A stretch of 63,900 nt of DNA, the filler included, from Octopus bimaculoides (Eukaryota), in the NCBI RefSeq assembly GCF_001194135.2. It is 4 parts of 4 records of this genome, joined end to end, with 100 filler letters (N's around TTAATTAATTAA, not from the genome) between each part and the next. Parts side by side here need not be neighbours in the genome. Positions count along the whole stretch, not along the records: positions 18,259 to 30,127 come from NC_068987.1; 3 more parts are not named here. One strand, 5' to 3'. The notes under the pieces are model-generated. The model was not told the DNA's origin, did no database searches, and saw nothing but the letters and a program-made list of their open reading frames with translations. Position numbers and translations under genes: made by a program. This document shows, in pieces, positions 19,400 to 26,053 of the stretch (position 1 is the first letter of the stretch; the number at the start of each line of letters is the position of its first letter).

Positions 19400-19530
19400 A
19401 TTCTGAATCCCCCGGAAAGTATTTAGTATAGAAGAACTTATGTAACCAATAGCAATAATCTTAGTTATATCAATATCAACACTTTGATAACACTGAACAC
19501 ATATATAAAAGAAAAAATTTAGTCTCCACT
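19400..19530 (+). promoter_or_regulatory. Putative core promoter of the signal-peptide gene
   Basis: TATATAAAAG at 19502-19511, TGATAA (GATA) at 19485-19490, TTATGTAA (PAR/C-EBP-type bZIP) at 19438-19445, and imperfect kB-like GGGGGATTCA on the minus strand at 19404-19413. Confidence 0.4.
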
Positions 19531-19564
19531 TTATTGTGATCGTTGACTTTCTTAAGTAAACATC

Positions 19565-19610
19565 ATGAAGACTATATATCTTCTCATCGTCGTTGTGGCC
19601 ATAGTTTCAG
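19565..19610 (+). CDS. Putative first coding exon of a secreted protein (signal-peptide exon, MKTIYLLIVVVAIVS+G, phase-1 intron)
   Basis: ATG in aaacatcATG context. 15 codons give a basic n-region and hydrophobic h-region, followed by G|GTGAGT, a consensus donor. TATATAAAAG lies ~60 bp upstream. The flank is non-repetitive. Confidence 0.6.
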
Positions 19611-19713
19611 GTGAGTATCGTGTGATATAATATGTTTTTACTATTTTACTAAACTAACACTTTCTATTACAAATATGGATACATACATACATACATACAT
19701 ACATGCATATATT

Positions 19714-19758
<45 letters not shown>

Positions 19759-20114
19759 AGAGAGAGAGAGAGATAGAGAGATAGAGAAAGAGAGATCGTG
19801 TTATCAGTTTAGCATATACATGTATGTATATATGTACGTACATACATAAATACATGCATACATATATCATTGTATCCTTATTTGATCACCTGAATTTCTC
19901 TCATAGCCACTCATTACTTCGCGGTCTCCGTCCCTGATAAAAATTTCGGAGTGTAAATTCAAATCGCTTGAGTGCTAATAAGTGCTTTCCATATTGAGAA
20001 TGTATGTATGTATGTATGTATGTATGTATGTATGTATGTATGTATGTATGTATGCATGCATGCATGTATGTATGTATGTATGTATCTACGTATGCATGTA
20101 TGCATGTATGTATG

Positions 20115-23100
20115 TCTCTTATATTTTTTAACTATCATAAATCTTCCATTGAGGAGGTAGCCGGTTTCTGACAATGATACAAGACTCCATATTTAGGATG
20201 TAGTTAACACAGATAAATTCACATTTAAAACTTGAGAAAAGTCTTGCATATTTTTACTCTTCCAGTCACAGGTTGCACTTGTAATGTACGAATTAGCCGG
20301 TCTATTTCTGAAAATCCCTGTTTATTCAGATTCTCCTTTAAGCATTTGCTAACAAAACTTAGTGCTCCAATTATTATTGGTATGACTATGGATATAGAAG
20401 CTAAAGGTTTTGAAGCAGTTGTCTATATATATCTTTTTCTTTGATTTTCAGAGAGATATTTATATCTGCAGGGCAGCTGACCTCTATGATGGTACATACC
20501 ATTGCCCCTCTGTCCCAAACAACAATATCTGGCCTGTTATATTTACATTTGACAGAGGGATTTTCTAAGTTTATTTCAGGACAGTCTTTTTTTGCGGTTG
20601 GTATTGTAAATTGTTTTTGCGACAACATCATGCCGCATAGGGAGGTAGTACCGTGATGACATTTTAGGATAGCTGCTAATCACATGCGTAATGTCTTCTA
20701 CAGAAACATGACATAGCCTACACATACGGTTGGTCCTTGGGGTTACAAGAGCATCATTATCTCTCTTGTTCAATAGATACTTTGTATCAATCTCCTGTTC
20801 CTGGACTGCAAACGCATAGCCTTCAAAGTGTGATGTGATGTAGTGGTTTTGTTTCAAAGAGAGGCTGCGCTTCGAGTCAATTCTACTGTCTTCTTCAAGC
20901 TTCCGGGCAACATATCCATGTATAGTCTCTTTTTTGTATACTGAGTTCTTTCCATCTAGGTCTTCTCTGAGGTAAGGGAGCCCAGCTGTTTTGGGGCTGT
21001 ATCATCAAGAATCGAGTGCATCTTGAGGAGCTCACTGCCAACTTGTGCAATATTGCTCACTTCACTTTTCAGCACTGCATTTATATATTTATTTTTACTG
21101 CTGTTGTTCAGCAGGTGCTGCCTGAATGATACCATACGGCATCCGAAGGCCCATTTCCACTGATCTCAGGCCTCTATCACCTTTATTTCTTCTTAAGTAG
21201 AGCTTGTCAACATCACTGTTTCTGTGGAATTTCCCAGTTGCTGTCAGGATTTTGCGGATTTTGATATCTATGGAGTAGATTTCCTCTACAGGCCAATCAA
21301 GTATCCCAAATGTTGGGATCTGCACTGGTAATGGAAATGTATTGTGGGATATTGTTTTGTTGTAAGAGTAGAGTTCTGACTGCCATATTCTCTGGCGTAA
21401 TATTCTTGGGTCACCCTATCTTTATTCACAGTGCTTTTGTATGATACATTTTCAAATATGCCTAGGTACTTGTAATATTCTTTGTGTGGAATGGGGGAGA
21501 TAGCTTGACCGTTGATGCATAAGTTTTGGGTTTGGGCGATTGACTTTCCTCGTTCTATAACCAAATATGAACATTTCTTTTGGTAAAATTCCATGCTTAT
21601 ATCAACTGAAAATGTTATTAATTTCAGTTGTTTTTTGGCATTGTTAACACTTCTAGCATAAATCTTGAGGTTGTCTACAAAGAAATTATGAGTTACATTG
21701 ATATTTATAGCAGTTAAATATCCTAGCATGTAACCATTTGTTTTCTGCTGTAGGAACGATAATGGATTCTGTGCCAAAATGAAAAGAAGTACAGAAATAC
21801 TATCTCCCTGGAATATTCCTTATTTTTATTGCTGATGTTCAGCAGGTGCTGCCTAGTGATACCATTCCCTTTGAAATGCCTTTATATNNNNNNNNNNNNN
21901 NNNNNNNNNNNNNNNNNNNNNNNNNNNNNNNNNNNNNNNNNNNNNNNNNNNNNNNNNNNNNNNNNNNNNNNNNNNNNNNNNNNNNNNNNNNNNNNNNNNN
22001 NNNNNNNNNNNNNNNNNNNNNNNNNNNNTTACTGTTGTTCTTCAGCAGGTGCTGCATGAATGATATCATACATCATTCTAAGGCCCATCTAATACAGTTC
22101 TCAGTTGGAAGGGTGAGAATTGCTGTCCATGTCTTTGTGAGTCTCTCTGTAGCAGCGATTAGGGTGGTAGGTACTTTTGCCACACAAAGATGTAGGCATT
22201 TCAACAGCCATGAATGAGGGATAAAGACGAATGCCTTCTTATAGTCAAGTCACACTGTCCCAAGGTTTCTACGCTGTTTTCTTACTTCAGATAGTACAGT
22301 TTTGTTTATTAAAAGTTGTTCGGCACATCTCCACACTCCCTTCTTTACACTAGCCTGTTTATCAGTCACGATGTTGTTCGACTCACCATGTTCCTGGAGG
22401 AATTGGTTGAGACAACTAGTGTACAGTTTGTACATAATGCTTAGGTCAGCAAAGGGCCTGTAGTTTACTGCCATTTCGGTGTTTTCATTTTTGGCAACCA
22501 GATTTGTCTTTGCTGTAGCAAGACAATTTGGTATATCAGTCCTTTTGAACATACATATCAAGTGGTTTCTATAGAATATCAGCTTCTTGAACCAATATCC
22601 ACTATAATCCAGGTGCCTTCCCATTTTTCAGTTTGCCTACTACTATAGCGAAGGTTTCTGCATCAATTTTGTGTGTATTACTGTTAGTGTTAGTACAGTA
22701 TTCTCTCTCAATTGTATTTAACCATAATGCATTCAGGTAGAAATCCCTCTTTTCGTCAAATTTTTGACCAGAATGATTGTAGATCTTCTTGGGAGGGAGC
22801 TTTCTTAATGGTAATGTTTTCTTTCCTCATCTCTCCGTATAATGCTTGTGGGTTGGAAGCAAACTTGCGATTTGATACTGGCTCGTTCAAAAGTTTGCAT
22901 GCGATAACGGAATTTCTCGCTCATCGTCCTGAGTTCATATTTTAAAGTGATTAGCTTTCCCTCAAGAGCACGTCGTGAAGATTTGCTATAAAGTTTCAGT
23001 AATTTTTGTCTAAGGTGGAGTTGCTGAGCTGTAAACTCACTTTTTTCCTTACATTTTATTGTTGTAGTTAGCCATCCTATATGGCGGCGCAAGTTGATGT

Positions 23101-24933: not shown

Positions 24934-24972
24934 TTGTTACATCCTGGATGTTTAACTGGACCAAGGTTTCGG
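24934..24972 (+). CDS. Candidate exon 2 (phase 1-1, 39 nt): (V)VTSWMFNWTKVS
   Basis: Strong acceptor ccctttttccttccag and donor G|GTAATG. The frame is open and phase-compatible with the 19565 exon, extending the signal peptide to VVTS. Confidence 0.35.
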
Positions 24973-25109
24973 GTAATGAAAAGTTGTCAATTTTAACTTG
25001 CGACTCTCTGGGCATCTAAAGCAATAAGCAACAATAAGGAAACATTATCAAGTCATACTCGTTAATGAATGATGGCTGACTGTTCTATAATTAGCGATAG
25101 TTGAGAATA

Positions 25110-25610
25110 GTCACAAATTTCTGGTGCCACCGCTGCCTACCCGCTAGTTTACCAGTCGCAGAGTGGCGGCATTGCTCGAAGCATGGCGGCTCCTTTCAAC
25201 GTCTGGCACCTGGACAATGCGACGGGCTAAGCGGACCCGTAGAGAGTGTCTGTCACGATCCCCGATCAGTGGTTTGCTTTCTGACGAGGATCGGCTTCGG
25301 GATTAACTCATCCAAATCGGAGGTACGATGGAGAGGGCTTGCGGTTTACGTCTCGAACGTATGATTATTATTCTTCAAGGTGCAGGTGTCCCGAAAGTTC
25401 TTATCCTTTGTTCACCGATCCTCGCGCCTGCCACTCGCGCCATCCTCAAGTTCTGTCTTCGCCAACCCGAAACGTTGAGGAGAGGACTGAACAGCGACCT
25501 TCTGGCATTCTCCTTGTTAAGGAACTGCTTCGCTATGCCGAAGCTCCTGTACCCACTCCATAGTGTCCCTTGTTTCAGCCACGCCTACGTCCTCCAAGGT
25601 CTTGATTTAT
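25110..25610 (+). mobile_element. CRE-clade non-LTR retrotransposon RT fragment
   Basis: Frameshifted translation FNVWHLDNAT..GPVESVCHD..IGFGINSSKSEV..LCSPI..FSLLRNCFAMPKLLYPLHSVPC, matching the CRE-type WYLDDGT(L/I)GG ... LLxNCFxxPKLLY pattern. Confidence 0.7.
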
Positions 25611-25631
25611 ATGTTTGAATGTATGTGTGCG

Positions 25632-25665
<34 letters not shown>

Positions 25666-25991
25666 TATANNNNNNNNNNNNNNNNNNNNNNNNNNNNNNN
25701 NNNNNNNNNNNNNNNNNNNNNNNNNNNNNNNNNNNNNNNNNNNNNNNNNNNGTGTGTGTGTGTGTGTGTGTGTGTGTGCTTGTGTGTGTGTGTGTAAGTG
25801 TGTGTATGTATTGTTGTATGTAGGGAGTGTCATTATGCCAATATTATTAACACACTAGTTCAATTTCACTAGTTCAATTTATTATTAGTCAATTGGTTGC
25901 ATATCCAACTAACTAATCGATTGTTTGATTAATTTGGTTAAACATTGATCCATTTGTTTTGTTTTTGTTTGTCAAAGCCCTTTCGTTGCAG

Positions 25992-26053
25992 CTTGGAACC
26001 CTTTCAATATCTTTCTTCTTAGCCCATTACAGAGGCTGTGTTTCTCTGCCTGA
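25992..26053 (+). CDS. Candidate terminal exon (phase 1): (A)WNPFNIFLLSPLQRLCFSA*
   Basis: Long T-rich tract ending ccctttcgttgcag. The phase-1 frame is open to TGA at 26051-26053. Confidence 0.25.

Follow-up and report, generated by a model that had tools for sequence, protein, structure and literature searches.

A probable signal-peptide exon of Octopus bimaculoides that is spliced to a distant Thr-rich mini-exon

A short stretch of the Octopus bimaculoides genome (NCBI RefSeq assembly GCF_001194135.2), in which a TATA box is followed by an ATG and 15 codons resembling a signal peptide, raises the question of whether it is the first exon of a gene and, if so, to which sequence it is spliced. 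The window, i.e., the whole stretch of DNA that was analysed (63,900 nt including filler), consists of four joined genome parts, and the candidate exon lies in the part at positions 18259–30127 (from NC_068987.1), referred to below as the piece. A previous reading made from the DNA alone (the sequence-only reading) had proposed a small secreted peptide gene that is completed by two exons at 24934–24972 and 25992–26053. We consider it likely that a single-copy protein-coding gene begins with a TATA-driven exon at 19530–19610, which is spliced to a mini-exon at 30113 instead, and that the product is secreted and Thr-rich.

Sequencing runs from several organisms were used. Organism A is the one whose sequence is identical to the window at exon 1. 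RNA runs X27 and X38 are from organism A, RNA runs X25, X26, and X20 from organism B, and RNA run X31 from organism D; X1, X4, and X8 are DNA runs. An RNA contig from X27 (depth 1139) covers 19533–19612 with 0 mismatches; the letters that follow in it, ATAACCACTAATACTACAGCTACAAAAGGT, do not adjoin this segment in the genome. In the RNA of X38, contigs with the 3' part of exon 1 each have depths of 25,000 or more and continue in the same way as the contig from X27. RNA contigs from X25 and X26 (organism B) and from X31 (organism D) match exon 1 with 1 mismatch, have the same exit point, and then continue with TGCGTAACCAGTACTAATGGAGCTCCAAAA, from a homologous exon that is in frame (CVTSTNGAPK). 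In all five of these runs, the contigs leave the genome sequence at 19609–19612. Because they diverge at the splice donor GTGAGT (19611–19616, plus strand, phase 1), this donor is used in vivo. Transcripts that use the donor after 19610, which had been suggested as a test of the proposed gene, were thus found in the RNA of at least three organisms (A, B, and D).

The elements described for exon 1 by the sequence-only reading, namely the TATA box, the ATG, the 15 codons, and the G|GTGAGT donor, are all present as described. The TATA box TATAAAA (19504–19510, plus strand) is part of catatataaaag. RNA contigs have their 5' ends at 19533 (X27, X25) and at 19529 (X26), so that transcription starts approximately at 19529–19533; the distance to the TATA box, ca 25–30 nt in these three RNA contigs, corresponds to the canonical spacing. 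The 5' untranslated region (19530–19564, plus strand) was assigned according to these contig starts. It is followed by the coding part of exon 1 (19565–19610, plus strand), which begins with an ATG (19565–19567) in a good Kozak context (A at −3) and consists of the 15 codons MKTIYLLIVVVAIVS (19565–19609) and the first base of codon 16 (G19610).

The encoded N-terminus has the layout of a cleavable signal peptide: a basic n-region (MK), an h-region of 12 residues (TIYLLIVVVAIV), which is within the range of 7–15 residues and reaches a 10-residue hydropathy of up to 3.44, and a c-region of small residues (S-G). Small residues occur at −1 and −3, and the cleavage rule is satisfied either by V at −3 with G at −1 or by I at −3 with S at −1; the predicted site is an estimate. 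Both strands of the piece were scanned for further peptides of this type (initiated by ATG, with a basic N-terminus, a 10-residue mean hydropathy of at least 2.8, and a GTRAGT donor). Exon 1 is the only such site, and 0.023 sites per piece are expected by chance (300 Markov-1 resamples). While this figure is locally unusual, a genome of gigabase size is expected to hold thousands of such sites, so that the RNA evidence is decisive.

At the level of DNA, exon 1 is single-copy. The DNA contigs covering it have depths of 15.5 (X1), 13.9 (X4), and 41.4 (X8), with 0 differences from the window; the value for X1 equals the single-copy baseline of this run (ca 15).

The RNA letters downstream of exon 1 were placed at the end of the piece by a 10-mer scan. 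A search of the window for these letters with up to 3 mismatches gave no match because exon 2 is cut by the edge of the piece and because the window differs there. The first 15 nt of exon 2 (30113–30127, plus strand) follow ttttag, with the acceptor AG at 30111–30112; from 30113 the window reads gtggaaccactaatg and then passes into N filler. DNA contigs from X1, X4, and X8 cover 29800–30126 and then continue with ACTACAGCTACAAAAGGTAATTGATGCTCG. With their help exon 2 could be completed as GTATAACCACTAATACTACAGCTACAAAAG, which has 30 nt, is of phase 1-1, encodes (G)ITTNTTATK(G), and is directly followed by the donor GTAATT. This genomic exon 2 matches the RNA exactly. The junction between the two exons in X27 and X38 reads 19580–19610 followed by GTATAACC. 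In addition, an RNA contig from X27 (1250 nt, depth 9.7) lies on 29800–30112 and stops exactly at the last base of the intron, as expected of pre-mRNA that branches from the abundant spliced form. In organism A, the protein thus starts with MKTIYLLIVVVAIVS-GITTNTTATK-G (26 residues known), and five of nine residues from exon 2 are Thr.

Intron 1 (19611–30112, plus strand) was delimited by the RNA junction and spans ca 10.5 kb, a figure to which two gaps contribute estimated lengths. Both N gaps (21888–22028 and 25670–25751) are within the intron, and the frame across them is therefore irrelevant. The junction in the RNA places both ends of the piece in a single transcription unit, with the order and orientation of the scaffold.

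Within exon 2, the window and the reads do not fully agree. The window has gg at 30115–30116 and g at 30127, where the RNA (X27, X38) has at and a. All three DNA contigs cease to match at 30127 and have 2 unplaced differences, which are probably those at 30115–30116. The mismatch may be a reference error at a contig edge, or the window may represent a minor paralogous copy, dropped by the assembler.

Exon 1 is conserved in related organisms. In DNA of organism B, 0 of 45 coding bases are changed, the base corresponding to G19610 is T, and the donor is intact; a TATA-like box is kept despite C19500T and A19508T. DNA of organism E has an intact donor and one synonymous coding change (19606 T>C). 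The flanks of exon 1 differ by ca 6% in DNA of B and E, compared to 0 or 1 change in the coding part. The ATG, the frame, and the donor are kept in both B and E. Loss of the frame or the donor in related species had been named as a further ground for rejecting the sequence-only reading, so that neither of its two tests speaks against exon 1, and its central claim, an expressed gene for a secreted product in which the signal peptide has an exon to itself that ends at a phase-1 intron, is supported; with the donor used in RNA and the frame kept in related species, this is an expressed, spliced protein-coding gene. The protein of organism B starts with MKTIYLLIVVVAIVS-CVTSTNGAPK, and the reading frame is uninterrupted in both A and B. 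Exon 2 differs between A and B in 9 of 30 bases and 7 of 10 residues, as opposed to 0 of 45 bases in the coding part of exon 1. The divergence of exon 2 could reflect diversifying selection on the predicted mature part, or paralogous mini-exons may have been compared. When two stretches were searched, the DNA runs of organism A contained the stretch completely, and runs of the related organisms B–F contained ca 1/4–1/3 of the sampled words, which is about the share that the exon alone would supply.

Expression is very high in a few libraries and is restricted. Among the listed RNA runs of organism A, words of the exon occur only in X27 and X38 and are missing from seven other contig runs. In three raw-read RNA runs from 2026, 0 exon 1 reads were found in the ca 6% of each run that was sampled.

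Several RNA contigs show additional features. Coverage in X38 starts abruptly at ca 19578, and the contigs from this run have just 31–73 nt, with depths capped at 25,000; this is perhaps a 3'-biased or very short-read library, or an assembly graph fragmented by errors at extreme depth. In X20 (organism B), one RNA contig begins at 19493, 5' of the TATA box and directly after an Illumina adapter, which may be due to transcription from an upstream start, to DNA carry-over, or to an artefact. The contig from X31 (organism D) carries, 5' of 19550, the sequence AGTCTTTGCGGTAGTGGCTGTAGTCTTTGC, whose complementary strand has a frame that encodes AKTTATTAKT and resembles the Thr-rich exon 2; the contig may be an assembly chimera that reveals a downstream repeat, or organism D may have a different 5' end.

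From these data, the following picture may be drawn. The phase-1 donor at 19610/19611 is joined across a 10.5-kb intron filled with repeats to the 30-nt, phase 1-1 mini-exon at 30113, and the frame runs on as G-I-T-T-N-T-T-A-T-K-G, with the rest of the gene beyond the piece. The protein would enter the secretory pathway, and its predicted signal peptide would be removed near Ser15/Gly16. The Thr-rich part is a putative O-glycosylated, low-complexity, mucin-like segment of a product that may be secreted in large amounts by one specialised tissue. The unit of ca 1.1 kb that contains the mini-exon is duplicated in tandem. Mini-exon duplication may therefore be the way in which the gene has grown, and further mini-exons that arose in this manner may follow downstream.

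Several points count against this picture. We know 26 residues of the product, and its Thr-richness comes from one 10-residue exon, from which we infer the attributes 'mucin-like' and 'O-glycosylated'. The signal peptide was judged by its layout and hydropathy. Logan contigs are unstranded and may include chimeras. At three positions of exon 2, the window departs from all reads, which means either reference errors or several near-identical copies. That the gene is unannotated rests on empty searches of one protein collection, in which the coverage of the organism is unverified: a 51-aa query with the N-termini from A and B had no match at E ≤ 10. In the literature, no description of this peptide or family was found, and Rfam and tRNA scans of the piece gave no match. 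The gene is probably missing or truncated in the annotation.

Which other explanations could account for these observations? According to the sequence-only reading, exon 1 is joined to 24934–24972 and 25992–26053, resulting in a 48-aa, Trp/Phe-rich precursor. The splice-like motifs and the phases are arithmetically compatible (G plus 24934–24972 gives VVTSWMFNWTKVS and stays in phase 1); matching RNA coverage for the use of these exons was not found, and every RNA contig that leaves exon 1 enters the Thr-rich exon. There is no RNA contig on 24934–24972 in X27, X25, X26, and X20, nor on 26005–26054 in X27, X25, and X26. The only X27 coverage that touches the region 25992–26053 is a single contig on 25929–25988 which is 90–95% alike and comes from another repeat copy. 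The acceptor region of this third exon is within a high-copy repeat, and the few RNA contigs near 25878–25988, again 90–95% alike, are from other copies of high-copy repeats (DNA depth 500–6500 vs. ca 15). Moreover, loose splice criteria yield 64 acceptor-like and 164 donor-like sites in intron 1 and, from these, 62 open phase-1 candidates for internal exons and 150 for terminal exons, the two proposed exons among them. With so many candidates, a phase-compatible chain is expected by chance. The two exons are unused, and we consider the 48-aa precursor exceedingly improbable; the caveat in the same reading that only exon 1 is well supported was correct. It is nearly as improbable that exon 1 begins a spliced non-coding RNA with an accidental 15-codon open reading frame (ORF). 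While the 26 codons seen have no protein match, the sole coding change in exon 1 across organisms is synonymous in the presence of diverging flanks, the frame stays open through the 30-nt exon in A and B despite 30% divergence, and the start codon has a good Kozak context and opens a peptide with the n-, h-, and c-regions of a textbook signal peptide.

A small, fast-evolving secreted effector peptide of the toxin, antimicrobial, or signalling kind, with a conserved signal exon and a diversifying mature region, is a more serious competitor to a mucin-like structural protein, though we consider it rather unlikely. The contrast between exon 1 and exon 2 in A and B (0/45 changes in the coding part vs. 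9/30 bases and 7/10 residues, with non-coding flanks at ca 6%) is in its favour, as is the very high, restricted expression, and the abrupt start of X38 coverage at ca 19578 might mean a short mRNA in a 3'-biased library. However, the 11 known mature residues contain neither a cysteine framework nor a dibasic processing site, and the divergence between A and B may come from non-orthologous copies of the duplicated mini-exon. More generally, none of the features of small precursors, which have fewer than ca 120 aa (propeptide, processing sites, cysteine framework, or amphipathic mature peptide), is found in the 26 known residues.

Both alternatives for the secreted product, and the structure of its gene, can be compared to known systems. 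Venom and host-defence genes such as the conopeptide superfamilies have a conserved signal sequence on its own exon, large introns, and a hypervariable mature region. The gene described here is similar in that a near-invariant signal exon is closed by a phase-1 intron of ca 10 kb and the next exon is 30% different. It differs in that the visible part has no propeptide, cleavage motifs, or cysteines, except for one cysteine in the junction codon of organism B, and a search of the protein collection revealed no similarity to any known peptide superfamily. According to Patthy's exon-shuffling rule, extracellular proteins are built from phase 1-1 exon modules. Exon 2 resembles these modules as it is symmetric, can be duplicated or skipped without a frame break, and has a decayed duplicate 1.1 kb to the 5' side. 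Unlike such modules, it has just 10 residues and no folded domain.

The preferred reading, a Thr-rich and putatively mucin-like product, invites comparison with mucin-type proline-, threonine- and serine-rich (PTS) proteins. These are a functional class, not one defined by descent, and arise repeatedly through exonic repeats (Pajic et al., 2022; PMC9417175). Points of likeness are the signal peptide that is directly followed by a Thr-rich low-complexity stretch, the abundant, tissue-restricted expression, signs of repeated duplication of a coding unit, and possible copy-number differences between individuals (4.2x–8.6x). Where PTS mucins usually have their repeats within one large exon, the 10-residue unit is here an exon of its own (30 nt, phase 1-1); furthermore, only one unit was seen, exon 2 of organism A has no proline, and O-glycosylation is our supposition. 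A PTS protein would have a long region of tandem repeats rich in Thr and Ser, and usually in Pro; the sequence at hand comprises 10 mature residues, with five of nine being Thr in organism A, VTSTNGAPK from organism B, and the AKTTATTAKT fragment in the contig from organism D. The 26 residues do not suffice to decide on membership in either the PTS mucins or the secreted effectors.

Evidence for duplication comes from the region upstream of exon 2. A decayed copy of the mini-exon, together with its upstream intron, was identified by direct repeats and alignment at 28992–29015 (plus strand), ca 1120 nt 5' of exon 2. This copy has lost its acceptor (TG for AG), has a GC donor, and is shorter than exon 2. 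The direct repeats are 28813–28901/29931–30019 (83%) and 28918–28990/30038–30110 (86%). The DNA contigs that carry exon 2 (window 28873–30127) have mean word depths of 113.6 (X1), 58.3 (X4), and 355.7 (X8). Relative to the contig depth at exon 1 (over 19380–19675), these are ratios of 7.3x (X1), 4.2x (X4), and 8.6x (X8), which vary among the samples. The excess may stem from a multi-copy unit which is variable in copy number, or from an embedded high-copy element. In X38, two variants of exon 2 directly follow exon 1, one with GCT and the other with GCA and then TT. RNA contigs from organisms A and B break at or just past the junction between exons 2 and 3. Together, this suggests, but does not prove, that an array of near-identical mini-exons is located downstream.

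On this basis, we tentatively propose, as a possibility well short of an even chance, a lineage-restricted mucin-like gene of the type 'one exon per repeat'. It would have a single-copy signal exon and an array of near-identical units of more than 1 kb, each with a 30-nt phase 1-1 mini-exon for a Thr-rich decapeptide (GITTNTTATK); individuals would vary in the number of copies, and inclusion of the mini-exons would be subject to alternative splicing. An array would explain the 4–8x depth at exon 2, three variants of exon 2 in one species, the breaks of RNA contigs at exon 2/3, and the failure of assembly and annotation at this locus. If this proposal is true, the mRNA of the array gene would rank among the most abundant in some tissue.

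Irrespective of the array, the search of the protein collection revealed no counterpart of a transcript that is conserved among several relatives and whose contigs in one library reach depths of 25,000 or more. The unusual structure of the gene, with tiny exons and with long introns that are filled with repeats and contain assembly gaps, is a likely cause of such an annotation miss. Specialised tissues, e.g., glands, adhesive or mucous epithelia, and egg coats, often depend on abundant, secreted, lineage-restricted genes. The locus also illustrates that raw sequence suffices to recognise a signal-peptide exon, while chaining downstream mini-exons by eye is not to be trusted.

Upstream of the promoter, a 73-nt element occurs in two copies (18915–18987 and 19128–19200), which are 77% alike and are surrounded by long (ATT)n and (TTA/TTG)n arrays. 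The copies contain GAGTTCAAATTC, which resembles a tRNA B box, and the element is possibly similar to short interspersed nuclear elements; ARAGORN and Rfam gave no match to either copy.

Intron 1 contains microsatellites, decayed transposon ORFs, and high-copy repeats. The first gap (21888–22028) is situated between two copies of a repeated element (21095–21154 and 22029–22088) which are 87% alike. The second copy directly follows the gap, which is thus inside a duplicated element. On the minus strand, decayed ORFs of 76–163 aa, retrotransposon-like by impression, extend over 20400–23100 across this gap; the transposon-like ORF of 163 aa had no match in the protein collection, and Pfam assigned no family to ten intronic ORFs. 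The second gap (25670–25751), with (TA)n and (GT)n on its sides, is not bridged by the X1 DNA contig that starts at ca 25824. A block at 25100–25580 has a GC content of ca 45%, compared to ca 35% for the piece, and contains overlapping plus-strand ORFs of 74–96 aa; the block has neither a Pfam match nor RNA coverage in X27 and is not represented in the protein collection. High-copy repeats occupy 25878–26000 and 26080–26560 (DNA depth in X1 500–6500 vs. ca 15 for single copy). Minus-strand ORFs at 26229–26734 have no Pfam match and contain the motif 'DLNPLDF', which we take to be reminiscent of mariner/Tc1 transposases. A 27-nt tandem repeat is found at 26673–26743. Finally, a short plus-strand ORF at 27167–27340, which has no Pfam match, carries YVDD, the active-site motif of reverse transcriptases, and is probably a retroelement fragment.

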